The position numbers and the translations under genes are program-made. Below the pieces are notes generated by a model. It did not search any database. It worked only from the letters and a program-made list of their open reading frames with translations, and was not told where the DNA came from. A stretch of 64,000 nt of DNA. It comes from Tubulanus polymorphus. Lineage: Eukaryota > Animalia > Nemertea. Below are positions 1 to 17,971 of the stretch, one piece after another (the stretch's first letter is position 1; each line of letters begins with the position of its first letter). The stretch covers positions 1-64,000 of the forward strand of contig NW_027437451.1 of the NCBI RefSeq assembly GCF_964204645.1, in the 5' to 3' direction.

Positions 1-1960
1 TCTCGAGTATTATCAGCCGCTGCAGCAACCGATCTTCGAACAGACCGGGGAAGAAATTCGCGAAATCATCGAAAATATGGCTCGACGAAAAATCATCCCG
101 CTAAAAACCGCCGAATATCTATTACCGCCCGATAATCCGAAACAGAGGCAGTTCTATCTGCTTCCCAAAATCCATAAAGAACGCGAGAAGTGGACGGTAC
201 CCGATCGCGTACCGCCGGGGAGACCGATCGTCTCCGACTGCGGCTCCGAAACCTACGAAATTTCGGAATGGATCGACTACTATTTGCAGCCGATCGCCCG
301 CGGTCACCCGTCGTACGTCAAAGATACCAACCACTTTCTAGATATTTTGGCCGGTAAACAATTTAGCGCCGATGCGTTACTCGTCACCATGGACATCGAT
401 TCGCTCTACACCAACATCCCCCACGAAGAGGGTATCGCCAGCATCCGACAAGCTCTCCGAGATAACCCAAACCCGGGACGCCCGGATGCCGAGCTGCTGA
501 AACTACTCGAAATCAGCCTGAAGAAAAATGACTTTAACTTTAACGAAAACACATATTTACAGGTAAAAGGTACCGCAATGGGTAAGCGTTTTGCTCCTTC
601 TTATGCCAATATCTTTGTAGCCGAATGGGAAAAAGAGGGTCTGTCCAGAAGCGAACTCCAACCATCGCTATACGCTCGGTTCATCGACGACATCTACATA
701 GTTTGGGAACACGGCCGCGAAACGTTGATGCAATTCATCGACGTCCTACAAACAGTGAGCCGATCCATCAAACTCAAGTTCGAAATCAGCGACACCAGCG
801 TCAACTTCCTGGACGTAACCACTTTCAAAGGCCCGCGATTCGAGACAAGTGGCACAGTAGACACCAAAGTCTACTTCAAACCAACCGATTCGCATCAATT
901 ACTACATCGATCCTCGTTTCACCCTAAACACACATTTTCCGGTATAGTTAAAAGTCAAATTCTCCGGTTCCGGCGCATCTGCAATAACGATTCGGACTTA
1001 CACGCAGCGTCCGGAACCGTCCTTAAAGTACTCAGAGGTCGTGGCTACAAAGACCGCGAACTGCGACACATCAAAAGCCAAGCTCTACGGCACCACGCCG
1101 AACGAGATCTACGAGAACAACAACGGGCCGACGAACCGCCGAAAAAGCGTTTACCGCTTATCTTACCTCACTCCGAAGCCAACCGAACCCTAGCCCGTAA
1201 CATCCGAACCAGATTTACGGAACTGGCTACGGCCACCGGCCGGTCTGACGAGGTAACCACGGTCACCGCCTACACCAAGCACAAGAGTCTCAAAGATCTC
1301 CTAACTTCGTCGCAGCTCAAACCCACGGAGCCACCCCCTCCCCGAGTCCCCTCTTCACCGCATCGTAACAGAAATACTTCCGTTGTTTCCAATTCTTCTA
1401 TTTCCAGGTCTACTCAAAGAACTCCGTCAACCCGACGTCGAGGCACCGAGAAATGCAGAACACCGAGATGTCGTACGTGTCCACTCGTCCGAGAAACAAC
1501 CGTTTGCCGCAGCCACAACAAAATGCACGCGATCCGCAGCACAATTAATTGCGCGACCCGTGAAATTGTATACTGCATCGAATGCACCAAGTGCAACATG
1601 CTGTACGTCGGCCAAACCGGAATGTCTCTACGAGAACGCGTCACTCATCACGTCTCACGCATCAGAACGAAGAATTCGACTCCAGTCTCGGACCACTTCA
1701 ACCAAGTCGACCACACCCGCGAACACTTTCGGGTGTACGGTCTCCAACACCTACCAGGCTCCACGAGACCGATCCGCGAAGCAGCCGAACAAGACTGGAT
1801 ACGACGACTCGACACGAACACGCCCCGAGGCATGAACGTCCCGTAGACCGCCTCACTACAACAATTAACTCTCACTACTTTTTTACAGGGATAACCCGCT
1901 GCCCGTGCACTAGTGGGGTCTCCAAACCTTCGGTTTGGTCCCCTAACCTCTATCTCTAAA
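1..1960 (+). mobile_element. Penelope-like retroelement copy 1 (5' part outside window)
   Basis: Matches 5094-7053 (offset 5093); RT-GIY-YIG ORF plus 3' UTR ending CCCCTAACCTCTATCTCTAAA. Confidence 0.95.
2..1846 (+). CDS. PLE reverse transcriptase / GIY-YIG endonuclease, partial (N-terminus outside window)
   Basis: FYLLPKIHK, GRPIVS, TMDIDSLYTNIP, QVKGTAMG, RFIDD, VNFLD; C-terminal IVYCIECTKCNMLYVGQT...R...E...GMN. Frame is open from base 2; the ATG at 77 is internal. Confidence 0.95.
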   Translation, partial: LEYYQPLQQPIFEQTGEEIREIIENMARRKIIPLKTAEYLLPPDNPKQRQFYLLPKIHKEREKWTVPDRVPPGRPIVSDCGSETYEISEWIDYYLQPIARGHPSYVKDTNHFLDILAGKQFSADALLVTMDIDSLYTNIPHEEGIASIRQALRDNPNPGRPDAELLKLLEISLKKNDFNFNENTYLQVKGTAMGKRFAPSYANIFVAEWEKEGLSRSELQPSLYARFIDDIYIVWEHGRETLMQFIDVLQTVSRSIKLKFEISDTSVNFLDVTTFKGPRFETSGTVDTKVYFKPTDSHQLLHRSSFHPKHTFSGIVKSQILRFRRICNNDSDLHAASGTVLKVLRGRGYKDRELRHIKSQALRHHAERDLREQQRADEPPKKRLPLILPHSEANRTLARNIRTRFTELATATGRSDEVTTVTAYTKHKSLKDLLTSSQLKPTEPPPPRVPSSPHRNRNTSVVSNSSISRSTQRTPSTRRRGTEKCRTPRCRTCPLVRETTVCRSHNKMHAIRSTINCATREIVYCIECTKCNMLYVGQTGMSLRERVTHHVSRIRTKNSTPVSDHFNQVDHTREHFRVYGLQHLPGSTRPIREAAEQDWIRRLDTNTPRGMNVP

Positions 1961-1992
1961 CCTAACCCTAACCCTAACCCTAACCCTAACCC
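1961..1992 (+). repeat. Telomeric repeat tract between PLE copies 1 and 2
   Basis: CCTAA(CCCTAA)4CCC, 32 bp. Confidence 0.97.
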
Positions 1993-2685
1993 GGATTAAA
2001 GAAGAGATCATAGTGTTTTTGAACCACTCAAACTACGCAAGCTTAAACCGATTTACTGAATACCCGCGCTCCGGTCTGAATATATTTGTCACATGTTCAA
2101 GTTCACATAGCTTTACTCGATCCTAATAACTCTAAATAAGCGTAGTTTATCTAATAGAATTATATTTAAGAACTTAGAATTAAAACAGACGTATTAGTAA
2201 GACATTTCTATCAAAACTCGTCACCCATAATTAGGGCTAATTAACCACCCGCGCTCACTCAGTAATTTAGATCTTACGGGTTATAACTTCCTACTAAATC
2301 GCCGACGCCGCGCTGTCTAATTCATCCAATTTTCGGTAGAATACCGCGTAGATATTTCAAGATCCGCTCTTAAAATCTTTAGAATACGGAGAAAACTTGA
2401 TTAACTAGGAACCGGATTTCACCATTTACGACTATTTAGTAAACACGCGTATATCGGAATACGCCCCGGCCGCGCACCGCTAATTAACGCGTCTAAACTA
2501 ATTAGGAATTAAGCAATTTTGAAACTGAACTCGGACATATTTCGAACATTCCGGTTCACGTATATTAATAATACATATTCTAGATTTCTCTTTATAGAAA
2601 ACACTTTGAGTATTTATTAGGTTATATCGAAATAAACTTTTCAATTCTATATTAGACACGCCGTTCTTTAGATCTCTAGAACTAT

Positions 2686-2842
2686 ACATCAAAGCAAACT
2701 ATTCAACAGCTAGATCAAGGGCCATAATTAGTGCTGTTTTCTAGTCACTCTGGATCAAAGGCATAATTAGTCAGACCCCTAGTTTGTCTATTAGCTTGAT
2801 CACAGAAGTACAATTAGTCTAGATCACAAGGTCTCATATGGT
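2686..2842 (+). promoter_or_regulatory. Cluster of degenerate ~23-bp repeats upstream of the TATA box (putative enhancer)
   Basis: CTAGATCAAGGGCCATAATTAGT (2710), CTGGATCAAAGGCATAATTAGT (2750), CTTGATCACAGAAGTACAATTAGT (2795), CTAGATCACAAGGTCTCATATGGT (2819), plus ACATCAAAG at 2686. Confidence 0.45.
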
Positions 2843-2889
2843 CACTTAACTTCTAACTCGAATACTGTTCACTTGTTGCGCGCTGCGTG

Positions 2890-2920
2890 TATAAAAACCC
2901 GTGTCTAATCCTAGTTCAGC
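2890..2920 (+). promoter_or_regulatory. Putative Pol II core promoter (TATA + Inr-like)
   Basis: TATAAAA at 2890-2896; TTCAG with its A at 2918, 28 nt after the first T. Same motif at 7983 and 13791. Confidence 0.55.
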
Positions 2921-4483
2921 ATGATTCCTGCACTGACACTGACGAAGGCAACCTCGCCGAAATATCTGTCAATGGAGCGATCTACTCGAAAGAAGAAACG
3001 ACCACCAGCTGAGAAGACCAGCAAGGGCGGAGGACGCCCTGAGCGACACCAGCAACCCGGGATGTCGCCGAAAAATTACTATAGAGCTCTTCAAGTGGCG
3101 CACCACCTTGCCCAGTTGAGCTCTGGTCCGAAAGCGATTCGGAGGAAGAAGGACCATCTGAAGATGTTCCTGCGGCCGGCGGCTTGCACCGAAGCAGTAA
3201 CGGTGCAGCTGCACGCTGCCGCGGACGTCTGGATGGAGACAGTTTCGAAAGAGCTGACCATCCATTACGCTGCCACATTTGTTCAGCTAATGGGTGATCC
3301 TCTGCCGGACTGTCTATCAGCACAGGATGTCGCCCTGACATGGGCCCGGAGGAATTTCGGCTCCCGTCTGAGCCCCGGAACGATCCGGCTTTTCAACATC
3401 GCGCTGGATTTGCGGTCGAAATTCCGCGGTCAGGCTCTGTCTGACAAACTCAGAAATGTCCTATCTAACCCACCTTCTTCCCCTTCTCATTTCAGGTCAC
3501 ACCACCAGGAGGCACCCACGGAGCCGAAGATTCGTCCGCCGCCGAGACCGAGCCGGAAGATTCGAAAGCCCGCGACGCCGAGGACGCCTGCACCAACCGC
3601 AGCCGCGCCCGCCGCGCCCACAGCGCCTCCTTCTTTTTCTGATTCCAGGTCACCGAGAAGCTACGCGGATGTCACCAGGACGCCACCAACCAGAATGGCG
3701 CCACCACCGAGAAGCCCGATGCCGACGCCGCCGCCGCCGCCACCAAGAAGTCCGACGCCACCGAGAAGTCCGACGCCGCCGCCTCGAAACCCGACGCCGC
3801 CGCCGCCGCAGAGAACGCCGACCGCACCAACCAGCAGTCCGACGCCGTCTCTCTCTTCTTCTCTTTCCAGCTCTCCGTCTCATTACAGGTCACCAGGGCG
3901 CCTACTGCCAGCGCGAAGTCCGACGCCAACACCGAGACCGATGGCGCCCCAGGAAGTTCGCCGTCATCCGAAAACGGGTCGGAAGAAACAGGATTGGAGT
4001 CTGCCACCAACCCGGCGACCCATTCTGGTGATTGGTGACTCAAATCTGAGTAACATCACATCAAGCCGCCGTCCGGATGACGTCCAGATCGAGAGCTTCC
4101 CCGGCTGCAAGATAGCTCATCTCGCCGACCTGATCGATGCTGTACCGGAGCGCCGAGATCGCCCGGATACGGTGATCATCAGCGTCGGAATCAACAACCG
4201 CGACAACAACTTCGAAGCGACCGCCAAGAAGACCACACAGCGCCTGATCAACGCCGCAGTCAAGAAGTATCAGCACTCGTTCGTCCACTTCGTTCAACTC
4301 AACACGACCCGCGAACACCAGCAGTTCGCCCGGAAGTTCAACGAATTCCTCGAGAATCACGACGACGTCACCGCGATACCACCCATCGATGATCGACGCT
4401 TCAGAGTTGTTGGAGACGGGATCCACTGGAACCGTGGTACAGCTAACACCCTGCTGGACCACTGGCTCAGTGGTTTAAACTAA
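2921..4483 (+). CDS. PLE ORF1: basic N-terminus, Pro/Ser/Arg-rich linker, C-terminal SGNH/GDSL hydrolase
   Basis: SGNH blocks ILVIGDSN, FPG, ISVGINN, DGIH; RSPTPP repeats. The true start may be the ATG at 2972. Confidence 0.9.
   Translation: MIPALTLTKATSPKYLSMERSTRKKKRPPAEKTSKGGGRPERHQQPGMSPKNYYRALQVAHHLAQLSSGPKAIRRKKDHLKMFLRPAACTEAVTVQLHAAADVWMETVSKELTIHYAATFVQLMGDPLPDCLSAQDVALTWARRNFGSRLSPGTIRLFNIALDLRSKFRGQALSDKLRNVLSNPPSSPSHFRSHHQEAPTEPKIRPPPRPSRKIRKPATPRTPAPTAAAPAAPTAPPSFSDSRSPRSYADVTRTPPTRMAPPPRSPMPTPPPPPPRSPTPPRSPTPPPRNPTPPPPQRTPTAPTSSPTPSLSSSLSSSPSHYRSPGRLLPARSPTPTPRPMAPQEVRRHPKTGRKKQDWSLPPTRRPILVIGDSNLSNITSSRRPDDVQIESFPGCKIAHLADLIDAVPERRDRPDTVIISVGINNRDNNFEATAKKTTQRLINAAVKKYQHSFVHFVQLNTTREHQQFARKFNEFLENHDDVTAIPPIDDRRFRVVGDGIHWNRGTANTLLDHWLSGLN
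2931..2974 (+). ncRNA. Minimal type I hammerhead ribozyme motif (copy 2)
   Basis: CACTGACA-CTGACGA-A-GGC aacctc GCC-GAAA-TATC^TGTCAATG: stem I TGACA/TGTCA, cores CUGANGA and GAAA, stem II GGC/GCC, palindromic AUAU stem III; predicted cut after 2966. Confidence 0.85.
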
Positions 4484-4510
4484 GTATTAGTGAGACCAAC
4501 GGGTCCACTA
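4474..4510 (+). promoter_or_regulatory. Putative programmed -1 ribosomal frameshift signal (copy 2)
   Basis: T TTA AAC directly before the ORF1 TAA, 7-nt spacer, hairpin TAGTG-a-GACC aacg GGTC-CACTA; the -1 frame is the ORF2 frame, open from 4447. Confidence 0.8.
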
Positions 4511-4638
4511 TTGGTGAGTTAAATCAACCGGAATTAACCAATGCTTCTCTGATTTCTTCCATTTCCAGGTCCGACGAACACGAAGAACCGGCACCAAACC
4601 AAGCGCGACGCGATCCGGTCACCGCTCTCGGGAGCCCG

Positions 4639-6939
4639 GTGGTCAACCTCACACGTTCACTCCGCCTAAGTCCGGCGCAACATCAGCTACTCCGAAAGGG
4701 CCTCACTTATTGCCCGACTCCAAAAATCGGTTCTGATGCCGCCGCGACCGAGCGCACCAAGGGAGTGTGCCGATTCAACCGGCTAGTGAAACTCGACCAT
4801 CACTTCCGAGACAAACCGGACCGCGAGGCTCCGCGTTTCCGTCTGCCCAGCAGTTGGGCTCCGGATGAAATAGAACCAGTAATCGCCGGGTTCTGCAACG
4901 ACGCGCACGAATTGGCTCAACAAACCAGGGATACGCGTCGCGTAAATGATAACCTCACTAAACAGGAACGCGAAGCCCTCCAGCAGCTGCGTGACAACAC
5001 TAATATTGTCATCAAAGCCGCCGATAAGGGTTCCGCTACGGTTATCATGGACCGCGACGACTACGTCCACGAAGCCATGCGCCAACTAGCCGATCTCGAG
5101 TATTATCAGCCGCTGCAGCAACCGATCTTCGAACAGACCGGGGAAGAAATTCGCGAAATCATCGAAAATATGGCTCGACGAAAAATCATCCCGCTAAAAA
5201 CCGCCGAATATCTATTACCGCCCGATAATCCGAAACAGAGGCAGTTCTATCTGCTTCCCAAAATCCATAAAGAACGCGAGAAGTGGACGGTACCCGATCG
5301 CGTACCGCCGGGGAGACCGATCGTCTCCGACTGCGGCTCCGAAACCTACGAAATTTCGGAATGGATCGACTACTATTTGCAGCCGATCGCCCGCGGTCAC
5401 CCGTCGTACGTCAAAGATACCAACCACTTTCTAGATATTTTGGCCGGTAAACAATTTAGCGCCGATGCGTTACTCGTCACCATGGACATCGATTCGCTCT
5501 ACACCAACATCCCCCACGAAGAGGGTATCGCCAGCATCCGACAAGCTCTCCGAGATAACCCAAACCCGGGACGCCCGGATGCCGAGCTGCTGAAACTACT
5601 CGAAATCAGCCTGAAGAAAAATGACTTTAACTTTAACGAAAACACATATTTACAGGTAAAAGGTACCGCAATGGGTAAGCGTTTTGCTCCTTCTTATGCC
5701 AATATCTTTGTAGCCGAATGGGAAAAAGAGGGTCTGTCCAGAAGCGAACTCCAACCATCGCTATACGCTCGGTTCATCGACGACATCTACATAGTTTGGG
5801 AACACGGCCGCGAAACGTTGATGCAATTCATCGACGTCCTACAAACAGTGAGCCGATCCATCAAACTCAAGTTCGAAATCAGCGACACCAGCGTCAACTT
5901 CCTGGACGTAACCACTTTCAAAGGCCCGCGATTCGAGACAAGTGGCACAGTAGACACCAAAGTCTACTTCAAACCAACCGATTCGCATCAATTACTACAT
6001 CGATCCTCGTTTCACCCTAAACACACATTTTCCGGTATAGTTAAAAGTCAAATTCTCCGGTTCCGGCGCATCTGCAATAACGATTCGGACTTACACGCAG
6101 CGTCCGGAACCGTCCTTAAAGTACTCAGAGGTCGTGGCTACAAAGACCGCGAACTGCGACACATCAAAAGCCAAGCTCTACGGCACCACGCCGAACGAGA
6201 TCTACGAGAACAACAACGGGCCGACGAACCGCCGAAAAAGCGTTTACCGCTTATCTTACCTCACTCCGAAGCCAACCGAACCCTAGCCCGTAACATCCGA
6301 ACCAGATTTACGGAACTGGCTACGGCCACCGGCCGGTCTGACGAGGTAACCACGGTCACCGCCTACACCAAGCACAAGAGTCTCAAAGATCTCCTAACTT
6401 CGTCGCAGCTCAAACCCACGGAGCCACCCCCTCCCCGAGTCCCCTCTTCACCGCATCGTAACAGAAATACTTCCGTTGTTTCCAATTCTTCTATTTCCAG
6501 GTCTACTCAAAGAACTCCGTCAACCCGACGTCGAGGCACCGAGAAATGCAGAACACCGAGATGTCGTACGTGTCCACTCGTCCGAGAAACAACCGTTTGC
6601 CGCAGCCACAACAAAATGCACGCGATCCGCAGCACAATTAATTGCGCGACCCGTGAAATTGTATACTGCATCGAATGCACCAAGTGCAACATGCTGTACG
6701 TCGGCCAAACCGGAATGTCTCTACGAGAACGCGTCACTCATCACGTCTCACGCATCAGAACGAAGAATTCGACTCCAGTCTCGGACCACTTCAACCAAGT
6801 CGACCACACCCGCGAACACTTTCGGGTGTACGGTCTCCAACACCTACCAGGCTCCACGAGACCGATCCGCGAAGCAGCCGAACAAGACTGGATACGACGA
6901 CTCGACACGAACACGCCCCGAGGCATGAACGTCCCGTAG
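4639..6939 (+). CDS. PLE ORF2 reverse transcriptase + GIY-YIG endonuclease (frame open from 4447; probably expressed as an ORF1 fusion)
   Basis: IKAADKG N-terminal PLE motif, RT motifs with FIDD, CxxxxCxxC linker, GIY-YIG with internal CxxC. The track start is GTG, not ATG. Confidence 0.95.
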   Translation: MVNLTRSLRLSPAQHQLLRKGLTYCPTPKIGSDAAATERTKGVCRFNRLVKLDHHFRDKPDREAPRFRLPSSWAPDEIEPVIAGFCNDAHELAQQTRDTRRVNDNLTKQEREALQQLRDNTNIVIKAADKGSATVIMDRDDYVHEAMRQLADLEYYQPLQQPIFEQTGEEIREIIENMARRKIIPLKTAEYLLPPDNPKQRQFYLLPKIHKEREKWTVPDRVPPGRPIVSDCGSETYEISEWIDYYLQPIARGHPSYVKDTNHFLDILAGKQFSADALLVTMDIDSLYTNIPHEEGIASIRQALRDNPNPGRPDAELLKLLEISLKKNDFNFNENTYLQVKGTAMGKRFAPSYANIFVAEWEKEGLSRSELQPSLYARFIDDIYIVWEHGRETLMQFIDVLQTVSRSIKLKFEISDTSVNFLDVTTFKGPRFETSGTVDTKVYFKPTDSHQLLHRSSFHPKHTFSGIVKSQILRFRRICNNDSDLHAASGTVLKVLRGRGYKDRELRHIKSQALRHHAERDLREQQRADEPPKKRLPLILPHSEANRTLARNIRTRFTELATATGRSDEVTTVTAYTKHKSLKDLLTSSQLKPTEPPPPRVPSSPHRNRNTSVVSNSSISRSTQRTPSTRRRGTEKCRTPRCRTCPLVRETTVCRSHNKMHAIRSTINCATREIVYCIECTKCNMLYVGQTGMSLRERVTHHVSRIRTKNSTPVSDHFNQVDHTREHFRVYGLQHLPGSTRPIREAAEQDWIRRLDTNTPRGMNVP

Positions 6940-7053
6940 ACCGCCTCACTACAACAATTAACTCTCACTACTTTTTTACAGGGATAACCCGCTGCCCGTG
7001 CACTAGTGGGGTCTCCAAACCTTCGGTTTGGTCCCCTAACCTCTATCTCTAAA

Positions 7054-7085
7054 CCTAACCCTAACCCTAACCCTAACCCTAACCC
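7054..7085 (+). repeat. Telomeric repeat tract between copies 2 and 3
   Basis: CCTAA(CCCTAA)4CCC, same length as 1961-1992. Confidence 0.97.
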
Positions 7086-8013
7086 GGATTAAAGAAGAGA
7101 TCATAGTGTTTTTGAACCACTCAAACTACGCAAGCTTAAACCGATTTACTGAATACCCGCGCTCCGGTCTGAATATATTTGTCACATGTTCAAGTTCACA
7201 TAGCTTTACTCGATCCTAATAACTCTAAATAAGCGTAGTTTATCTAATAGAATTATATTTAAGAACTTAGAATTAAAACAGACGTATTAGTAAGACATTT
7301 CTATCAAAACTCGTCACCCATAATTAGGGCTAATTAACCACCCGCGCTCACTCAGTAATTTAGATCTTACGGGTTATAACTTCCTACTAAATCGCCGACG
7401 CCGCGCTGTCTAATTCATCCAATTTTCGGTAGAATACCGCGTAGATATTTCAAGATCCGCTCTTAAAATCTTTAGAATACGGAGAAAACTTGATTAACTA
7501 GGAACCGGATTTCACCATTTACGACTATTTAGTAAACACGCGTATATCGGAATACGCCCCGGCCGCGCACCGCTAATTAACGCGTCTAAACTAATTAGGA
7601 ATTAAGCAATTTTGAAACTGAACTCGGACATATTTCGAACATTCCGGTTCACGTATATTAATAATACATATTCTAGATTTCTCTTTATAGAAAACACTTT
7701 GAGTATTTATTAGGTTATATCGAAATAAACTTTTCAATTCTATATTAGACACGCCGTTCTTTAGATCTCTAGAACTATACATCAAAGCAAACTATTCAAC
7801 AGCTAGATCAAGGGCCATAATTAGTGCTGTTTTCTAGTCACTCTGGATCAAAGGCATAATTAGTCAGACCCCTAGTTTGTCTATTAGCTTGATCACAGAA
7901 GTACAATTAGTCTAGATCACAAGGTCTCATATGGTCACTTAACTTCTAACTCGAATACTGTTCACTTGTTGCGCGCTGCGTGTATAAAAACCCGTGTCTA
8001 ATCCTAGTTCAGC

Positions 8014-9576: not shown

Positions 9577-9603
9577 GTATTAGTGAGACCAACGGGTCCA
9601 CTA
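9567..9603 (+). promoter_or_regulatory. Putative -1 frameshift signal (copy 3)
   Basis: TTTAAAC + hairpin as in copy 2. Confidence 0.8.
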
Positions 9604-9731
9604 TTGGTGAGTTAAATCAACCGGAATTAACCAATGCTTCTCTGATTTCTTCCATTTCCAGGTCCGACGAACACGAAGAACCGGCACCAAACCAAGCGCG
9701 ACGCGATCCGGTCACCGCTCTCGGGAGCCCG

Positions 9732-12032
9732 GTGGTCAACCTCACACGTTCACTCCGCCTAAGTCCGGCGCAACATCAGCTACTCCGAAAGGGCCTCACT
9801 TATTGCCCGACTCCAAAAATCGGTTCTGATGCCGCCGCGACCGAGCGCACCAAGGGAGTGTGCCGATTCAACCGGCTAGTGAAACTCGACCATCACTTCC
9901 GAGACAAACCGGACCGCGAGGCTCCGCGTTTCCGTCTGCCCAGCAGTTGGGCTCCGGATGAAATAGAACCAGTAATCGCCGGGTTCTGCAACGACGCGCA
10001 CGAATTGGCTCAACAAACCAGGGATACGCGTCGCGTAAATGATAACCTCACTAAACAGGAACGCGAAGCCCTCCAGCAGCTGCGTGACAACACTAATATT
10101 GTCATCAAAGCCGCCGATAAGGGTTCCGCTACGGTTATCATGGACCGCGACGACTACGTCCACGAAGCCATGCGCCAACTAGCCGATCTCGAGTATTATC
10201 AGCCGCTGCAGCAACCGATCTTCGAACAGACCGGGGAAGAAATTCGCGAAATCATCGAAAATATGGCTCGACGAAAAATCATCCCGCTAAAAACCGCCGA
10301 ATATCTATTACCGCCCGATAATCCGAAACAGAGGCAGTTCTATCTGCTTCCCAAAATCCATAAAGAACGCGAGAAGTGGACGGTACCCGATCGCGTACCG
10401 CCGGGGAGACCGATCGTCTCCGACTGCGGCTCCGAAACCTACGAAATTTCGGAATGGATCGACTACTATTTGCAGCCGATCGCCCGCGGTCACCCGTCGT
10501 ACGTCAAAGATACCAACCACTTTCTAGATATTTTGGCCGGTAAACAATTTAGCGCCGATGCGTTACTCGTCACCATGGACATCGATTCGCTCTACACCAA
10601 CATCCCCCACGAAGAGGGTATCGCCAGCATCCGACAAGCTCTCCGAGATAACCCAAACCCGGGACGCCCGGATGCCGAGCTGCTGAAACTACTCGAAATC
10701 AGCCTGAAGAAAAATGACTTTAACTTTAACGAAAACACATATTTACAGGTAAAAGGTACCGCAATGGGTAAGCGTTTTGCTCCTTCTTATGCCAATATCT
10801 TTGTAGCCGAATGGGAAAAAGAGGGTCTGTCCAGAAGCGAACTCCAACCATCGCTATACGCTCGGTTCATCGACGACATCTACATAGTTTGGGAACACGG
10901 CCGCGAAACGTTGATGCAATTCATCGACGTCCTACAAACAGTGAGCCGATCCATCAAACTCAAGTTCGAAATCAGCGACACCAGCGTCAACTTCCTGGAC
11001 GTAACCACTTTCAAAGGCCCGCGATTCGAGACAAGTGGCACAGTAGACACCAAAGTCTACTTCAAACCAACCGATTCGCATCAATTACTACATCGATCCT
11101 CGTTTCACCCTAAACACACATTTTCCGGTATAGTTAAAAGTCAAATTCTCCGGTTCCGGCGCATCTGCAATAACGATTCGGACTTACACGCAGCGTCCGG
11201 AACCGTCCTTAAAGTACTCAGAGGTCGTGGCTACAAAGACCGCGAACTGCGACACATCAAAAGCCAAGCTCTACGGCACCACGCCGAACGAGATCTACGA
11301 GAACAACAACGGGCCGACGAACCGCCGAAAAAGCGTTTACCGCTTATCTTACCTCACTCCGAAGCCAACCGAACCCTAGCCCGTAACATCCGAACCAGAT
11401 TTACGGAACTGGCTACGGCCACCGGCCGGTCTGACGAGGTAACCACGGTCACCGCCTACACCAAGCACAAGAGTCTCAAAGATCTCCTAACTTCGTCGCA
11501 GCTCAAACCCACGGAGCCACCCCCTCCCCGAGTCCCCTCTTCACCGCATCGTAACAGAAATACTTCCGTTGTTTCCAATTCTTCTATTTCCAGGTCTACT
11601 CAAAGAACTCCGTCAACCCGACGTCGAGGCACCGAGAAATGCAGAACACCGAGATGTCGTACGTGTCCACTCGTCCGAGAAACAACCGTTTGCCGCAGCC
11701 ACAACAAAATGCACGCGATCCGCAGCACAATTAATTGCGCGACCCGTGAAATTGTATACTGCATCGAATGCACCAAGTGCAACATGCTGTACGTCGGCCA
11801 AACCGGAATGTCTCTACGAGAACGCGTCACTCATCACGTCTCACGCATCAGAACGAAGAATTCGACTCCAGTCTCGGACCACTTCAACCAAGTCGACCAC
11901 ACCCGCGAACACTTTCGGGTGTACGGTCTCCAACACCTACCAGGCTCCACGAGACCGATCCGCGAAGCAGCCGAACAAGACTGGATACGACGACTCGACA
12001 CGAACACGCCCCGAGGCATGAACGTCCCGTAG
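9732..12032 (+). CDS. PLE ORF2 RT + GIY-YIG endonuclease, copy 3
   Basis: Translation identical to 4639-6939. Confidence 0.95.
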   Translation: MVNLTRSLRLSPAQHQLLRKGLTYCPTPKIGSDAAATERTKGVCRFNRLVKLDHHFRDKPDREAPRFRLPSSWAPDEIEPVIAGFCNDAHELAQQTRDTRRVNDNLTKQEREALQQLRDNTNIVIKAADKGSATVIMDRDDYVHEAMRQLADLEYYQPLQQPIFEQTGEEIREIIENMARRKIIPLKTAEYLLPPDNPKQRQFYLLPKIHKEREKWTVPDRVPPGRPIVSDCGSETYEISEWIDYYLQPIARGHPSYVKDTNHFLDILAGKQFSADALLVTMDIDSLYTNIPHEEGIASIRQALRDNPNPGRPDAELLKLLEISLKKNDFNFNENTYLQVKGTAMGKRFAPSYANIFVAEWEKEGLSRSELQPSLYARFIDDIYIVWEHGRETLMQFIDVLQTVSRSIKLKFEISDTSVNFLDVTTFKGPRFETSGTVDTKVYFKPTDSHQLLHRSSFHPKHTFSGIVKSQILRFRRICNNDSDLHAASGTVLKVLRGRGYKDRELRHIKSQALRHHAERDLREQQRADEPPKKRLPLILPHSEANRTLARNIRTRFTELATATGRSDEVTTVTAYTKHKSLKDLLTSSQLKPTEPPPPRVPSSPHRNRNTSVVSNSSISRSTQRTPSTRRRGTEKCRTPRCRTCPLVRETTVCRSHNKMHAIRSTINCATREIVYCIECTKCNMLYVGQTGMSLRERVTHHVSRIRTKNSTPVSDHFNQVDHTREHFRVYGLQHLPGSTRPIREAAEQDWIRRLDTNTPRGMNVP

Positions 12033-12146
12033 ACCGCCTCACTACAACAATTAACTCTCACTACTTTTTTACAGGGATAACCCGCTGCCCGTGCACTAGT
12101 GGGGTCTCCAAACCTTCGGTTTGGTCCCCTAACCTCTATCTCTAAA

Positions 12147-12166
12147 CCTAACCCTAACCCTAACCC
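12147..12166 (+). repeat. Telomeric repeat tract between PLE copy 3 and the SINE-like dimer
   Basis: CCTAA(CCCTAA)2CCC, 20 bp. Confidence 0.95.
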
Positions 12167-12491
12167 GAGGTCACAGGAAATGACAGTCGTCGGTCTGCCC
12201 AGGTAGCTCAACTGGTAGAGCAGTCGTCCGGCAAACGAAAGGTCCGTGGTTCGAGTCCCGGTCTAGGTGGTGGACTGTGCTTTTCCCGATGCCCCTAACT
12301 CTAATGCCTTCCGACAGGTGGGAGTTAGCCTGATTTCCCGCTGCCCGTGCTCTAGTGGGGAACTGAAAAAGAAATTAATTAATACATCTCGATTAACAGT
12401 CTCGGGGGTTAATCTGAAGAACACACTTGTCATATAATTAATATTCAAATTCAAAAATTGGTTCCCCTAACCTCTATCTCTATACCTAACC
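12167..12491 (+). mobile_element. tRNA-headed SINE-like non-autonomous element, copy 1 (lacks the first ~28 nt of copy 2)
   Basis: tRNA-like head with A/B boxes; 3' motifs shared with the PLE 3' end; repeated at +353. Confidence 0.85.
12197..12269 (+). tRNA. tRNA-like sequence (anticodon GGC, Ala-like), probably a SINE head / pseudo-tRNA
   Basis: GCCCAGG TA GCTC AACTGGTA GAGC A GTCGT CCGGCAA ACGAA AGGTC CGTGG TTCGAGT CCCGG TCTAGGT G; 73 nt; A box 12204-12215, B box 12248-12258; mismatches in acceptor, anticodon and T stems. Confidence 0.8.
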
Positions 12492-12844
12492 TCAGCCTGT
12501 GCCAGGAATGAAGGAATGCGAGGTCACAGGAAATGACAGTCGTCGGTCTGCCCAGGTAGCTCAACTGGTAGAGCAGTCGTCCGGCAAACGAAAGGTCCGT
12601 GGTTCGAGTCCCGGTCTAGGTGGTGGACTGTGCTTTTCCCGATGCCCCTAACTCTAATGCCTTCCGACAGGTGGGAGTTAGCCTGATTTCCCGCTGCCCG
12701 TGCTCTAGTGGGGAACTGAAAAAGAAATTAATTAATACATCTCGATTAACAGTCTCGGGGGTTAATCTGAAGAACACACTTGTCATATAATTAATATTCA
12801 AATTCAAAAATTGGTTCCCCTAACCTCTATCTCTATACCTAACC
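12492..12844 (+). mobile_element. tRNA-headed SINE-like non-autonomous element, copy 2 (353 bp)
   Basis: Matches copy 1 from 12520; 58-nt segment before the tRNA head; ends in CCTAACC running into the telomeric tract. Confidence 0.85.
12550..12622 (+). tRNA. tRNA-like sequence (SINE head), copy 2
   Basis: Same as 12197-12269. Confidence 0.8.
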
Positions 12845-12893
12845 CTAACCCTAACCCTAACCCTAAACCTAACCCTAACCCTAACCCTAACCC
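12838..12893 (+). repeat. Telomeric repeat tract (56 bp) with one ACCTAA variant
   Basis: CCTAA(CCCTAA)4 ACCTAA (CCCTAA)3 CCC. Confidence 0.97.
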
Positions 12894-13821
12894 GGATTAA
12901 AGAAGAGATCATAGTGTTTTTGAACCACTCAAACTACGCAAGCTTAAACCGATTTACTGAATACCCGCGCTCCGGTCTGAATATATTTGTCACATGTTCA
13001 AGTTCACATAGCTTTACTCGATCCTAATAACTCTAAATAAGCGTAGTTTATCTAATAGAATTATATTTAAGAACTTAGAATTAAAACAGACGTATTAGTA
13101 AGACATTTCTATCAAAACTCGTCACCCATAATTAGGGCTAATTAACCACCCGCGCTCACTCAGTAATTTAGATCTTACGGGTTATAACTTCCTACTAAAT
13201 CGCCGACGCCGCGCTGTCTAATTCATCCAATTTTCGGTAGAATACCGCGTAGATATTTCAAGATCCGCTCTTAAAATCTTTAGAATACGGAGAAAACTTG
13301 ATTAACTAGGAACCGGATTTCACCATTTACGACTATTTAGTAAACACGCGTATATCGGAATACGCCCCGGCCGCGCACCGCTAATTAACGCGTCTAAACT
13401 AATTAGGAATTAAGCAATTTTGAAACTGAACTCGGACATATTTCGAACATTCCGGTTCACGTATATTAATAATACATATTCTAGATTTCTCTTTATAGAA
13501 AACACTTTGAGTATTTATTAGGTTATATCGAAATAAACTTTTCAATTCTATATTAGACACGCCGTTCTTTAGATCTCTAGAACTATACATCAAAGCAAAC
13601 TATTCAACAGCTAGATCAAGGGCCATAATTAGTGCTGTTTTCTAGTCACTCTGGATCAAAGGCATAATTAGTCAGACCCCTAGTTTGTCTATTAGCTTGA
13701 TCACAGAAGTACAATTAGTCTAGATCACAAGGTCTCATATGGTCACTTAACTTCTAACTCGAATACTGTTCACTTGTTGCGCGCTGCGTGTATAAAAACC
13801 CGTGTCTAATCCTAGTTCAGC

Positions 13822-15381
13822 ATGATTCCTGCACTGACACTGACGAAGGCAACCTCGCCGAAATATCTGTCAATGGAGCGATCTACTCGAAAGAAGAAAC
13901 GACCACCAGCTGAGAAGACCAGCAAGGGCGGAGGACGCCCTGAGCGACACCAGCAACCCGGGATGTCGCCGAAAAATTACTATAGAGCTCTTCAAGTGGC
14001 GCACCACCTTGCCCAGTTGAGCTCTGGTCCGAAAGCGATTCGGAGGAAGAAGGACCATCTGAAGATGTTCCTGCGGCCGGCGGCTTGCACCGAAGCAGTA
14101 ACGGTGCAGCTGCACGCTGCCGCGGACGTCTGGATGGAGACAGTTTCGAAAGAGCTGACCATCCATTACGCTGCCACATTTGTTCAGCTAATGGGTGATC
14201 CTCTGCCGGACTGTCTATCAGCACAGGATGTCGCCCTGACATGGGCCCGGAGGAATTTCGGCTCCCGTCTGAGCCCCGGAACGATCCGGCTTTTCAACAT
14301 CGCGCTGGATTTGCGGTCGAAATTCCGCGGTCAGGCTCTGTCTGACAAACTCAGAAATGTCCTATCTAACCCACCTTCTTCCCCTTCTCATTTCAGGTCA
14401 CACCACCAGGAGGCACCCACGGAACCGAAGATTCGTCCGCCGCCGAGACCGAGCCGGAAGATTCGAAAGCCCGCGACGCCGAGGACGCCTGCACCAACCG
14501 CAGCCGCGCCCGCCGCGCCCACAGCGCCTCCATCTTTTTCTGATTCCAGGTCACCGAGAAGCTACGCGGATGTCACCAGGACGCCACCAACCAGAATGGC
14601 GCCACCACCGAGAAGTCCGATGCCGACGCCGCCGCCGCCACCAAGAAGTCCGACGCCACCGAGAAGTCCGACGCCGCCGCCTCGAAACCCGACGCCGCCG
14701 CCGCCGCAGAGAACGCCGACCGCACCAACCAGCAGTCCGACGCCGTCTCTCTCTTCTTCTCTTTCCAGCTCTCCGTCTCATTACAGGTCACCAGGGCGCC
14801 TACTGCCAGCGCGAAGTCCGACGCCAACACCGAGACCGATGGCGCCCCAGGAAGTTCGCCGTCATCCGAATACGGGTCGGAAGAAACAGGATTGGAGTCT
14901 GCCACCAACCCGGCGACCCATTCTGGTGATTGGTGACTCAAATCTGAGTAACATCACATCAAGCCGCCGTCCGGATGACGTCCAGATCGAGAGCTTCCCC
15001 GGCTGCAAGATAGCTCATCTCGCCGACCTGATCGATGCTGTACCGGAGCGCCGAGATCGCCCGGATACGGTGATCATCAGCGTCGGAATCAACAACCGCG
15101 ACAACAACTTCGAAGCGACCGCCAGGAAGACCACACAGCGCCTGATCAACGCCGCAGTCAAGAAGTATCAGCACTCGTTCGTCCACTTCGTTCAACTCAA
15201 CACGACCCGCGAACACCAGCAGTTCGCCCGGAAGTTCAACGAATACCTCGAGAATCACGACGACGTCACCGCGATACCACCCATCGATGATCGACGCTTC
15301 AGAGTTGTTGGAGACGGGATCCACTGGAACCGTGGTACAGCTAACACCCTGCTGGACCACTGGCTCAGTGGTTTAAACTAA
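13822..15381 (+). CDS. PLE ORF1 (Pro-rich + SGNH hydrolase), copy 4
   Basis: 519 aa; one Pro fewer and K>N, K>R, F>Y versus copy 2; catalytic motifs intact. Confidence 0.9.
   Translation: MIPALTLTKATSPKYLSMERSTRKKKRPPAEKTSKGGGRPERHQQPGMSPKNYYRALQVAHHLAQLSSGPKAIRRKKDHLKMFLRPAACTEAVTVQLHAAADVWMETVSKELTIHYAATFVQLMGDPLPDCLSAQDVALTWARRNFGSRLSPGTIRLFNIALDLRSKFRGQALSDKLRNVLSNPPSSPSHFRSHHQEAPTEPKIRPPPRPSRKIRKPATPRTPAPTAAAPAAPTAPPSFSDSRSPRSYADVTRTPPTRMAPPPRSPMPTPPPPPRSPTPPRSPTPPPRNPTPPPPQRTPTAPTSSPTPSLSSSLSSSPSHYRSPGRLLPARSPTPTPRPMAPQEVRRHPNTGRKKQDWSLPPTRRPILVIGDSNLSNITSSRRPDDVQIESFPGCKIAHLADLIDAVPERRDRPDTVIISVGINNRDNNFEATARKTTQRLINAAVKKYQHSFVHFVQLNTTREHQQFARKFNEYLENHDDVTAIPPIDDRRFRVVGDGIHWNRGTANTLLDHWLSGLN
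13832..13875 (+). ncRNA. Minimal hammerhead ribozyme motif (copy 4)
   Basis: Same sequence as 2931-2974. Confidence 0.85.
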
Positions 15382-15408
15382 GTATTAGTGAGACCAACGG
15401 GTCCACTA
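15372..15408 (+). promoter_or_regulatory. Putative -1 frameshift signal (copy 4)
   Basis: TTTAAAC + hairpin unchanged. Confidence 0.8.
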
Positions 15409-15431
15409 TTGGTGAGTTAAATCAACCGGAA

Positions 15432-17837
15432 TTGACCAATGCTTCTCTGATTTCTTCCATTTCCAGGTCCGACGAACACGAAGAACCGGCACCAAACCAA
15501 GCGCGACGCGATCCGGTCACCGCTCTCGGGAGCCCGGTGGTCAACCTCACACGTTCACTCCGCCTAAGTCCGGCGCAACATCAGCTACTCCGAAAGGGCC
15601 TCACTTATTGCCCGACTCCAAAAATCGGTTCTGATGCCGCCGCGACCGAGCGCACCAAGGGAGTGTGCCGATTCAACCGGCTAGTGAAACTCGACCATCA
15701 CTTCCGAGACAAACCGGACCGCGAGGCTCCGCGTTTCCGTCTGCCCAGCAGTTGGGCTCCGGATGAAATAGAACCAGTAATCGCCGGGTTCTGCAACGAC
15801 GCGCACGAATTGGCTCAACAAACCAGGGATACGCGTCGCGTAAATGATAACCTCACTAAACAGGAACGCGAAGCCCTCCAGCAGCTGCGTGACAACACTA
15901 ATATTGTCATCAAAGCCGCCGATAAGGGTTCCGCTACGGTTATCATGGACCGCGACGACTACGTCCACGAAGCCATGCGCCAACTAGCCGATCTCGAGTA
16001 TTATCAGCCGCTGCAGCAACCGATCTTCGAACAGACCGGGGAAGAAATTCGCGAAATCATCGAAAATATGGCTCGACGAAAAATCATCCCGCTAAAAACC
16101 GCCGAATATCTATTACCGCCCGATAATCCGAAACAGAGGCAGTTCTATCTGCTTCCCAAAATCCATAAAGAACGCGAGAAGTGGACGGTACCCGATCGCG
16201 TACCGCCGGGGAGACCGATCGTCTCCGACTGCGGCTCCGAAACCTACGAAATTTCGGAATGGATCGACTACTATTTGCAGCCGATCGCCCGCGGTCACCC
16301 GTCGTACGTCAAAGATACCAACCACTTTCTAGATATTTTGGCCGGTAAACAATTTAGCGCCGATGCGTTACTCGTCACCATGGACATCGATTCGCTCTAC
16401 ACCAACATCCCCCACGAAGAGGGTATCGCCAGCATCCGACAAGCTCTCCGAGATAACCCGAACCCGGGACGCCCGGATGCCGAGCTGCTGAAACTACTCG
16501 AAATCAGCCTGAAGAAAAATGACTTTAACTTTAACGAAAACACATATTTACAGGTAAAAGGTACCGCAATGGGTAAGCGTTTTGCTCCTTCTTATGCCAA
16601 TATCTTTGTAGCCGAATGGGAAAAAGAAGGTCTGTCCAGAAGCGAACTCCAACCATCGCTATACGCTCGGTTCATCGACGACATCTACATAGTTTGGGAA
16701 CACGGCCGCGAAACGTTGATGCAATTCATCGACGTCCTACAAACAGTGAGCCGATCCATCAAACTTAAATTCGAAATCAGCGACACCAGCGTCAACTTCC
16801 TGGACGTAACCACTTTCAAAGGCCCGCGATTCGAGACAAGTGGCACAGTAGACACCAAAGTCTACTTCAAACCAACCGATTCGCATCAATTACTACATCG
16901 ATCCTCGTTTCACCCTAAACACACATTTTCCGGTATAGTTAAAAGTCAAATTCTCCGGTTCCGGCGCATCTGCAATAACGATTCGGACTTACACGCAGCG
17001 TCCGGAACCGTCCTTAAAGTACTCAGAGGTCGTGGCTACAAAGACCGCGTACTGCGACACATCAAAAGCCAAGCTCTACGGCACCACGCCGAACGAGATC
17101 TACGAGAACAACAACGGGCCGACGAACCGCCGAAAAAGCGTTTACCGCTTATCTTACCTCACTCCGAAGCCAACCGAACCCTAGCCCGTAACATCCGAAC
17201 CAGATTTACGGAACTGGCTACGGCCACCGGCCGGTCTGACGAGGTAACCACGGTCACCGCCTACACCAAGCACAAGAGTCTCAAAGATCTCCTAACTTCG
17301 TCGCAGCTCAAACCCACGGAGCCACCCCCTCCCCGAGTCCCCTCTTCACCGCATCGTAACAGAAATACTTCCGTTGTTTCCAATTCTTCTATTTCCAGGT
17401 CTACTCAAAGAACTCCGTCAACCCGACGTCGAGGCACCGAGAAATGCAGAACACCGAGATGTCGTACGTGTCCACTCGTCCGAGAAACAACCGTTTGCCG
17501 CAGCCACAACAAAATGCACGCGATCCGCAGCACAATTAATTGCGCGACCCGTGAAATTGTATACTGCATCGAATGCACCAAGTGCAACATGCTGTACGTC
17601 GGCCAAACCGGAATGTCTCTACGAGAACGCGTCACTCATCACGTCTCACGCATCAGAACGAAGAATTCGACTCCAGTCTCGGACCACTTCAACCAAGTCG
17701 ACCACACCCGCGAACACTTTCGGGTGTACGGTCTCCAACACCTACCAGGCTCCACGAGACCGATCCGCGAAGCAGCCGAACAAGACTGGATACGACGACT
17801 CGACACGAACACGCCCCGAGGCATGAACGTCCCGTAG
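15432..17837 (+). CDS. PLE ORF2 RT + GIY-YIG endonuclease, copy 4
   Basis: Same motifs; DRELR>DRVLR; the track's TTG start arises from a TTA>TTG substitution. Confidence 0.95.
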   Translation: MTNASLISSISRSDEHEEPAPNQARRDPVTALGSPVVNLTRSLRLSPAQHQLLRKGLTYCPTPKIGSDAAATERTKGVCRFNRLVKLDHHFRDKPDREAPRFRLPSSWAPDEIEPVIAGFCNDAHELAQQTRDTRRVNDNLTKQEREALQQLRDNTNIVIKAADKGSATVIMDRDDYVHEAMRQLADLEYYQPLQQPIFEQTGEEIREIIENMARRKIIPLKTAEYLLPPDNPKQRQFYLLPKIHKEREKWTVPDRVPPGRPIVSDCGSETYEISEWIDYYLQPIARGHPSYVKDTNHFLDILAGKQFSADALLVTMDIDSLYTNIPHEEGIASIRQALRDNPNPGRPDAELLKLLEISLKKNDFNFNENTYLQVKGTAMGKRFAPSYANIFVAEWEKEGLSRSELQPSLYARFIDDIYIVWEHGRETLMQFIDVLQTVSRSIKLKFEISDTSVNFLDVTTFKGPRFETSGTVDTKVYFKPTDSHQLLHRSSFHPKHTFSGIVKSQILRFRRICNNDSDLHAASGTVLKVLRGRGYKDRVLRHIKSQALRHHAERDLREQQRADEPPKKRLPLILPHSEANRTLARNIRTRFTELATATGRSDEVTTVTAYTKHKSLKDLLTSSQLKPTEPPPPRVPSSPHRNRNTSVVSNSSISRSTQRTPSTRRRGTEKCRTPRCRTCPLVRETTVCRSHNKMHAIRSTINCATREIVYCIECTKCNMLYVGQTGMSLRERVTHHVSRIRTKNSTPVSDHFNQVDHTREHFRVYGLQHLPGSTRPIREAAEQDWIRRLDTNTPRGMNVP

Positions 17838-17951
17838 ACCGCCTCACTACAACAATTAACTCTCACTACTTTTTTACAGGGATAACCCGCTGCCCGTGCA
17901 CTAGTGGGGTCTCCAAACCTTCGGTTTGGTCCCCTAACCTCTATCTCTAAA

Positions 17952-17971
17952 CCTAACCCTAACCCTAACCC
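17952..17971 (+). repeat. Telomeric repeat tract at the PLE/satellite junction
   Basis: CCTAA(CCCTAA)2CCC; the last CCCTAACCC coincides with the satellite's own motif (CCCTAACCC-ATCATTTAAGAT). Confidence 0.95.

Follow-up and report, generated by a model that had tools for sequence, protein, structure and literature searches.

A polarized array of Penelope-like elements

Positions 1 to 64,000 of contig NW_027437451.1 from the nemertean Tubulanus polymorphus (assembly GCF_964204645.1; this whole stretch is termed the window) harbor, in positions 1-17971, a head-to-tail array of Penelope-like elements (PLEs) that encode an endonuclease (EN) and end in telomere-type repeats. Satellite DNA extends from 17962 to the window end, and the two parts are distinguished by their GC content, which per 2-kb segment is 44-58% in the first 18 kb and 34-36% in the other 46 kb. 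As the first-pass annotation, made from the letters alone, had claimed, the array contains four PLE copies in the same orientation. All are on the plus strand, with a unit of 5.04 kb and, in all complete copies, the same start base (GGATTAAAGAAGAG); three of them (copies 1-3) are identical duplicates. Copy 1 (1-1940) has lost its 5' part at the window edge and retains the C-terminal part of open reading frame 2 (ORF2) and the 3' untranslated region (UTR). It is identical to positions 5094-7033 and contains an ATG-initiated ORF of 589 aa at 77-1846. Copy 2 (1993-7033) is full length, with a 5' UTR (1993-2920), ORF1 (2921-4483), the ORF2 frame (4447-6939), and a 3' UTR (6940-7033). Copy 3 (7086-12126) is full length and identical to copy 2, and the full-length copy 4 (12894-17931) has its ORF1 at 13822-15381 and the end of its ORF2 at 17837. 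Between copies 3 and 4 lies a short tRNA-like element, present as a tandem dimer (12166-12844, plus strand).

The sequences that join these units all have the same strand polarity. The first tail and tract (1941-1992) begins as a degenerate C-strand segment, CCCCTAACCTCTATCTCTAAACCTAA, and continues as perfect CCCTAA repeats, and the second (7034-7085) is identical to it. The third (12127-12166) is two repeats shorter and abuts the short element, the fourth (12818-12893) is the longest, with about eight further repeats, and the fifth (17932-17971) passes in phase into the CCCTAACCC motif that belongs to the satellite. The last junction reads CCCTAACCC followed directly by ATCATTTAAG, and the satellite itself contains ACCCTAACCCATCA. 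Overall, the tail and tract lengths in the array are 28, 40, 40, 52, and 76 nt. The motif TTAGGGTTAGGG matches 13 times, always on the minus strand, compared with a chance expectation of 0.01. Telomere-type sequence had initially been placed at every junction. Such C-strand sequence indeed closes five of the six joints, but the sixth, within the dimer, shows no more than 28 nt of a degenerate form, and at least the first ~30 nt at each joint are the element's own tail (see below). Other parts of the initial description stand as given: the array lacks poly(A), the 3' ends point into the 46-kb satellite, which the last tail enters in phase, and the RNA-sense strand ends in CCCUAA-type sequence, as expected for pairing with a TTAGGG 3' end. 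Target-site duplications are not judgeable inside such repeats.

The array records more than one event. Copy 4 differs from copies 2 and 3 by 12 substitutions and a 3-bp in-frame deletion, and five of the six differences that fall in ORF2 are synonymous. By a binomial estimate, in which ~27% of random changes are expected to be synonymous, the chance of this is ~0.007, which indicates that copy 4 and copies 2/3 came from different functional source copies. Together with the interleaved short element and the unequal tract lengths, the divergence of copy 4 points to at least three events, one each for copy 4, for the dimer, and for the set formed by copy 3 and its duplicates. Copies 1-3 do not represent three independent events; they are the product of one event, of later duplication, or of copy-number ambiguity in the assembly.

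ORF1 and ORF2 encode a predicted esterase and a reverse transcriptase-nuclease

The 520-aa product of ORF1 has a basic N terminus, a proline-rich middle, and a C-terminal SGNH/GDSL esterase region with the motifs GDSN, FPG, GINN, and DGIHW. Pfam gave no match at its default threshold, with GDSL_2 found at E = 0.008. The four SGNH blocks are kept in eight homologues, and a profile of ORF1 homologues searched against the PDB found as its best match 4c1b_A (E = 8e-9), the esterase of the ORF1 protein (ORF1p) of the zebrafish L2 long interspersed element (LINE). From its sequence, the ORF1 C terminus is predicted to be an SGNH esterase like that of LINE ORF1p.

The ORF2 frame, which lies in the -1 frame relative to ORF1 and has no ATG before 5170, encodes a reverse transcriptase (RT) and a GIY-YIG nuclease with an internal Cys pair, joined by a Cx4CxxC linker. 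The RT, which is of the PLE type, matched Pfam RVT_1 (E = 1e-7) and contains an FIDD motif, while the nuclease matched Pfam GIY-YIG with E = 3e-4 and 21.3 bits, slightly under the 22.6-bit cut-off. Its motif series, VYCIECTKCNMLYVGQT...R...H...H...E...N, has the internal Cys pair of the CCHH type, and in a 10-sequence alignment of diverse relatives residues Y676, C680, C683, Y687, G689, R698, H702, H717, E748, and N764 are invariant. The nuclease of the window element thus appears, as judged from its residues, to be intact. Upstream of the GIY motif, the linker, CRTPRCRTC, has the Neptune-type CX2-5CxxC form, and a Cys-rich linker was seen in most of the 80 relatives scanned. These domain matches, combined with the invariant nuclease residues, support the earlier description of the element as an EN-positive, two-ORF PLE. 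Homologues with the RT-plus-GIY-YIG layout number in the thousands, and ORF1 homologues were found upstream of RT-nuclease ORFs on other contigs, which indicates that the two-ORF, EN-positive layout is not peculiar to this genome. The comparison of ORF2 with solved structures gave no match. Exact-sequence look-ups of the 520-aa ORF1 product and of the 589 aa that ORF2 encodes after its first ATG returned no record, and a search with the C-terminal 299 aa gave nothing at E<=1e-20, which is weak evidence given the strict cut-off and length window used.

At the end of ORF1, a heptamer of the coronavirus slippery-site type, U_UUA_AAC (4474-4480, plus strand), lies in the ORF1 frame directly before the stop codon (4481-4483). 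A hairpin (4488-4510, plus strand) begins 7 nt downstream, and though this spacing is right, the folding energy of the region is no different from that of shuffled sequences (z = -0.10). The heptamer is present in register in five of seven family representatives (the window element, L017, L018, L007, and L004) and in 36 of the 80 further loci of our metagenome comparison set, which were oriented by ORF2. In L017, L018, L007, and L004, whose ORF2 proteins are 39-61% identical to that of the window, the distance between it and the end of the ORF1 stop codon is 9-21 nt, and ORF2 is open in the -1 frame. The recurrence of an in-register heptamer across relatives provides comparative support for programmed -1 frameshifting into ORF2.

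Two further features of the coding regions were observed. The ORF2 proteins show two subarchitectures, in which a block with the pattern IPFS...TAYKRxKNLxDLLVxS precedes the Cys linker and nuclease (the window element, P0002, and P0019) or follows the nuclease (P0115, P0076, and P0008), a difference in domain order inside one PLE group. In ORF1, the proline-rich middle contains an 18-bp tandem repeat, CCGACGCCACCAAGAAGT, at 3734-3777, 8827-8870, and 14632-14675, and the 3-bp indel that distinguishes copy 4 from copies 2 and 3 is located just upstream of it.

The 3' module and telomere-type tail

In all PLE 3' ends a box, CCCGCTGCCCGTGCACTAGTGGGG, comes first, then a hairpin with a UUCG loop, and finally the degenerate tail with its perfect CCCTAA repeats. 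In copy 2 this module spans 6994-7031 on the plus strand, with the box, GCCCGTGCA, at 6994-7002 and the hairpin, CCAAACC/GGTTTGG, at 7015-7031, just before the tail. The core of the box, GCC[CA]GTGC[ACT], occurs just six times in the 64-kb window, once per PLE 3' UTR and once per dimer unit. Of 83 related loci, 30 have it after the ORF2 stop codon, in most cases at a distance of 20-110 nt. Taken alone, the 3' UTR fold is not energetically significant (z = -0.77). However, the closest relative, L017 (ORF2 61% identical), has the same 3' layout with a hairpin of different sequence at the same place, which supports the 3' hairpin.

In the window family and in relatives the sense strand carries reverse-complement telomeric repeats at its 3' end, as it does in the Athena and Coprina PLEs. 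Just upstream of these repeats, where Athena and Coprina have a hammerhead fold, there is a plain hairpin and the conserved box. Indeed, Rfam searches at E<=1 revealed no hammerhead in window positions 1-18500 or in seven tail-bearing relatives, and no family other than tRNA matched in positions 1-18500. Two variations of the tail were noted among relatives. Predictions for the 3' UTRs of L026, L039, L027, and L071 pair the first C-strand repeats of the tail with a G-strand-like segment farther upstream (for example GGGGATTAGGG...CCCTAATCCC), which would hide the tail in a hairpin. In L019 and L020, ~735-750 nt past the ORF2 stop codon, three copies of a 7-nt repeat, CCCTAAC, lie beside CCCTAA and may reflect a different host telomere motif or variation of the tail.

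A tRNA-like element with a PLE 3' end

The dimer between copies 3 and 4 resembles a short interspersed element (SINE). It has a period of 353 bp, its units are 100% identical, and it ends in a tail of the PLE type. The units contain tRNA-like segments (12197-12269 and 12550-12622, plus strand) that score 47.3 bits with the Rfam tRNA model, compared with a gathering score of 29, as well as one PLE-type box each (12343 and 12696, plus strand). Comparison of the dimer unit with the PLE shows matches at 23 of 24 nt of the box region and 50 of 51 nt of the terminus, in the same order. The box and tail common to both make the short element a plausible nonautonomous partner, and dependence on the PLE machinery is, at the level of sequence, plausible. 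The tandem arrangement, with a slightly 5'-short first unit, resembles PLE-style partial-tandem integration.

The short element had been proposed to be a tRNA-derived passenger of the PLE. The shared 3' box and tail favor this view, but its tRNA origin is less straightforward: the tRNA-like part begins 31-59 nt inside the 353-bp unit, unlike in a textbook SINE, and though A- and B-box-like sequences (TAGCTCAACTGG and GGTTCGAGTCC) are present in the tRNA-like segment, ARAGORN calls no tRNA gene there. Like tRNA-derived SINEs that share the 3' tail of a LINE, the element combines a tRNA-like segment with a 3' box and tail that match an autonomous element. In contrast to these SINEs, its partner is a PLE, its tRNA-like part is internal, and its unit is present as a tandem dimer, in PLE style. 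No description of a tRNA-like element with a PLE tail was found in the literature searched.

In addition, the 28-nt leader between the dimer units (12491-12518) contains a 15-nt exact match, AGCCTGTGCCAGGAA, to L004:5364-5378, which is repeated in each L004/L005 unit. This match to the 3' region of a family from an unrelated species may be due to chance or to a shared cis-element. The spacers at L004:4924-6720 and L015:1-300 contain several minus-strand tRNA-like fragments (GGTTCGAATCC-type arms, reverse complement). Such fragments in inter-ORF and UTR spacers suggest that tRNA-derived pieces are recurrent in the noncoding parts of this lineage.

Relatives form polarized arrays near contig ends

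One set of relatives is the P0115 family, from the long-read metagenome assembly ERZ25069859, whose ORF2 is ~46% identical to that of the window and has intact linker and GIY-YIG motifs. A 30-kb stretch contains eight same-strand copies of this family, all complete at the 3' end. Their 5' junctions are heterogeneous, with starts at positions 1, 1413, 2326, 2961, 5130, 5536, and 5875 of the 6.9-kb unit and one more copy cut by the locus edge, and they are separated by 30-140 nt of (CCCTAA)n. Tracts reach 240 nt in relatives. Whereas all complete copies in the window are full length, relatives thus show variable 5' truncation with tract caps near contig ends. On all four large contigs of the P0115 family, the arrays lie within ~60 kb of a contig end (three at 0-48 kb from the start, one at 10-59 kb from the end), with 3' ends pointing inward. 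One further relative, L018, is a 6.4-kb contig with CCCTAA-like repeats at both ends. Among the 80 metagenome loci, 18 have runs of (CCCTAA)2 or longer, all on the ORF2 coding strand, and none has TTAGGG runs. Collectively, these independent relatives strongly back a polarized, end-associated habit.

In an ORF2 tree limited to relatives of the window element, this element groups with L017, and the tail-bearing loci fall in two clades. Their clustering is weak (19 of 500 shuffles were as low). Moreover, the near-identical loci L051 and L059 differ in the strict tail call, which makes the "no tail" label unreliable.

Just inside the array of a relative (L006 and L007, merged) there is a ~470-bp foldback, or inverted-repeat, element at ~27880-28350, and after it a short, degenerate, oppositely oriented TTAGGG tract (28797-28860).

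Proposed telomere-repeat priming and alternative explanations

We consider it probable that the window contains a young, apparently active EN-positive PLE family that, together with a dependent short element, has formed a head-to-tail array by telomere-repeat-primed reverse transcription. By this mechanism, the CCCUAA-type tail of the RNA would pair with a G-strand 3'-OH, provided either by an exposed or eroded chromosome end or by a nick in telomeric or telomere-like repeats, and the RT would extend it. Repeated priming events would stack copies in one polarity, with their 3' ends toward the chromosome interior, and short telomere tracts, pre-existing or telomerase-added, would stay between units. 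The tRNA-like element would be copied by the same machinery, as it has the same box and tail, and the retained nuclease would also permit ordinary internal insertions. Telomere-repeat priming would explain the strict polarity of the tracts and the inward-pointing 3' ends, as well as the in-phase fusion with the satellite (GGGTTAGGG) and the capped, truncated copies in relatives.

Several observations weigh against this interpretation. The suggestion that the array extends or colonizes a TTAGGG chromosome end draws support from its polarity and from the arrays of relatives, but the terminal location of the window array itself is unproven. Nor do the two P0115-family contig starts that were examined (ctg22068 and ctg22218) begin with a telomere tract, which indicates that the true termini were not reached, and long-read contig ends often fall in repeats, which qualifies the contig-end association. 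At a period of 5093 bp, copies 1-3 and the two linkers between them show 100% identity, with zero mismatch over 12.1 kb reaching the window edge, so that part of the array arose from duplication, PLE-style tandem formation, or assembly ambiguity. The best protein match, at 97% identity, is an uncharacterized T. polymorphus protein on the 32-Mb record OZ123226.1, and the DNA around it (L001), 12.1 Mb into the chromosome and among ordinary genes, contains a 5'-truncated copy that is 98% identical to the window element. The 3' end of this copy reads CTCTAAACCTAAACCC followed directly by AATATAATG, both of its flanks are nontelomeric, and L001 has no copy of the short element. Because the internal copy keeps the tail in the absence of a telomeric flank, at least the first ~30 nt of each telomere-type joint belong to the element. 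It also shows that the family can insert internally, as expected for an EN-positive element. Predominant dispersal among nontelomeric flanks had been named at the outset as the pattern that would speak against a telomeric habit; one such copy was seen.

The phase of the tracts is a further difficulty. Their right-hand ends are in one phase, ending in TAACCC, in six of seven junctions of the window family, including that of the internal copy (1992, 7085, 12166, 12893, 17971, and L001:12999), whether the DNA that follows is a PLE 5' end, the dimer 5' end, satellite, or unique sequence. In the P0115 family the phase is not constant. A constant phase is more in line with a tail templated by RNA than with ragged addition by telomerase, and it suggests a defined initiation point, or an RNA end, within the repeats. 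Neither addition to chromosome ends nor insertion at nicks neatly accommodates this constancy. PLE RTs are the nearest relatives of telomerase, and one speculative explanation is that this telomerase-related RT itself copies the CCCUAA tail reiteratively.

Under telomere-repeat priming, the 3'-OH could belong to a natural chromosome end, used in an Athena-like, nuclease-independent manner, or to a nuclease-made nick in telomeric repeats, as in the TRAS/SART elements. A related explanation, which we regard as unlikely although it merits serious consideration, is nuclease-dependent, site-specific insertion, whereby the GIY-YIG nuclease and Cys linker would recognize and nick (TTAGGG/CCCTAA)n or telomere-like motifs and target-primed reverse transcription would then place copies in telomeric or interstitial telomere-repeat tracts, in the manner of the silkworm TRAS and SART LINEs. 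The array need not then be terminal, and its polarity would not differ from that expected of end addition. The invariance of the catalytic residues in 10 diverse members, the mostly synonymous ORF2 differences between copies, and the constant junction phase all suit this scheme, and the CX2-5CxxC linker has been proposed to guide Neptune and Naiad to microsatellites (PMC8557442). However, the 46-kb satellite offers 127 exact CCCTAACCC motifs and none carries an insertion, and on the centromere side of copies 3 and 4 the tracts left do not exceed the length of the element's own tail. The internal copy, moreover, sits in AT-rich nontelomeric DNA, which indicates that the nuclease is not strictly telomere-specific. 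The untouched satellite motifs and the location of the relatives' arrays near contig ends favor natural-end priming.

The identity of copies 1-3 and the tail of L001 would also suit an ordinary interstitial PLE tandem array. In such an array, RNA copying of the element's AC-rich 3' tail, or of its initiation site, would by itself generate the "telomere" repeats, and any tie to chromosome ends would be a coincidence. Tandem or partial-tandem integration is indeed the norm for PLEs, and RT initiation at an AC-rich stem-loop has been shown for Poseidon (PMC11167929). Some related families lack telomere tracts in their tandem arrays, namely L004/L005, at ~400 kb in a 4.8-Mb contig, and L013. We nevertheless find this explanation improbable. 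A tail copied from RNA does not readily explain tracts whose length varies over 28-76 nt in the window and attains 240 nt in relatives, nor variably 5'-truncated copies that are each capped by a tract. The mixed content of the array, with a short element between PLE copies, the strict strand polarity of the tracts, and the inward orientation of all four contig-end arrays likewise argue against it. An array, or copy number, generated by misassembly of near-identical repeats is very improbable: the mismatch-free 5093-bp periodicity up to the window edge is what such an artifact might produce, yet copy 4, the dimer, and the junction with the satellite provide anchors of distinct sequence, and independent assemblies of other organisms contain the same architecture.

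Comparison with known telomeric and intrachromosomal retroelements

In the reviews and primary papers to 2026, EN-positive PLEs (Penelope/Poseidon, Neptune, Nematis, Hydra, and Naiad/Chlamys) are described as single-ORF, intrachromosomal elements, and a telomeric habit is assigned only to the EN-minus Athena, Coprina, and Terminon elements, which have a hammerhead followed by reverse-complement telomere repeats. The window element shares with the latter an RNA-sense 3' end with reverse-complement telomeric repeats beside a 3'-terminal fold, and head-to-tail polarized arrays with short telomere tracts between units, to which its relatives add tract-capped, 5'-truncated copies. It also has two ORFs, as in Athena, and an esterase, as in Terminons, in keeping with reports that Terminons carry GDSL esterases and that Athena has two ORFs (PMC6431247; PMC8557442). 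In contrast to Athena and Coprina, it contains a seemingly intact C-terminal GIY-YIG nuclease and a Cys-rich linker, no hammerhead was found in it, and at least one internal insertion is present. Its size of 5 kb also differs from that of Terminons, which reach up to 40 kb. Hammerheads are not universal among PLEs, as Naiad and Chlamys are without canonical ones (PMC8557442).

Comparison with Neptune reveals the same domain order of RT, CX2-5CxxC linker, and GIY-YIG domain with an internal Cys pair, as well as tandem arrangement and a bias of target or tail toward simple repeats (PMC8557442; PMC3846280). However, the window element has two ORFs, with a large esterase ORF1 and a putative -1 frameshift, rather than a single ORF, its tail is of the telomere type rather than (TA)n, and no hammerhead was found. 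The linker and nuclease are termed Neptune-type here by their predicted domain features, the tree being limited to relatives of the window element. The C-terminal SGNH esterase of ORF1 is in turn common to the ORF1p of CR1/L2 LINEs (ZfL2-1; PDB 4c1b; PMC3905857), except that here the esterase ORF would be linked by frameshifting to a PLE-type RT and nuclease.

The first-pass annotation did not recognize this combination as described, and the searched literature to 2026 agrees, in that it yielded no description of such a combination, though this is not proof of novelty. The element is a real and apparently undescribed PLE variant, and we infer that its family has the habits of Athena and Coprina while still possessing an endonuclease. 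Functional analogs exist among non-LTR retrotransposons. TRAS1 and SART1 are telomere-repeat-specific LINEs of Bombyx that insert into telomere-repeat tracts, and these elements, like HeT-A, TART, and TAHRE of Drosophila, accumulate in one orientation in or at telomeric repeats. They differ from the window PLE in their RT clade, in having an unrelated apurinic/apyrimidinic endonuclease or none, and in their poly(A) or other 3' ends.

More tentatively, and with somewhat less confidence than in the priming mechanism, the data raise the possibility of a widespread EN-positive PLE lineage, defined by the esterase ORF1, the -1 frameshift, the GCCCGTGCA box, and the C-strand tail, that colonizes chromosome ends in nemerteans and other invertebrates with a working nuclease. 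If so, the lineage would be the intermediate so far missing between Neptune elements, which are intrachromosomal, and Coprina and Athena at the termini, and attachment to telomeres would be older than, and independent of, the loss of the nuclease. A lineage that does both would blur the line drawn in current reviews between internal PLEs with a nuclease and telomeric PLEs without one. It would also provide a natural system for the capture of chromosome ends by an RNA tail, the recognition of telomeric repeats by a GIY-YIG nuclease and linker, and the evolution of telomere-specialized elements and telomerase-like copying. The U_UUA_AAC frameshift, the 3' box, and the LINE-shared esterase ORF1 add features that can be tested and used in annotation, and the tRNA-like element is a rare candidate for a PLE-dependent element.

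The satellite

The satellite (17962-64000, plus strand) is built of 102-bp monomers, most of them with a CC(C/T)TAACC motif on the same strand, which are organized in 306- and 408-bp higher-order units. Its 46 kb contain no PLE or SINE. The exact CCCTAACCC motifs are accompanied by 118 copies of CCTTAACCC, all on one strand, and the GC skew is strong (~-0.37). A variant segment of 151/49 bp occurs twice, 7391 bp apart, at 27732-28029 and 35123-35420.

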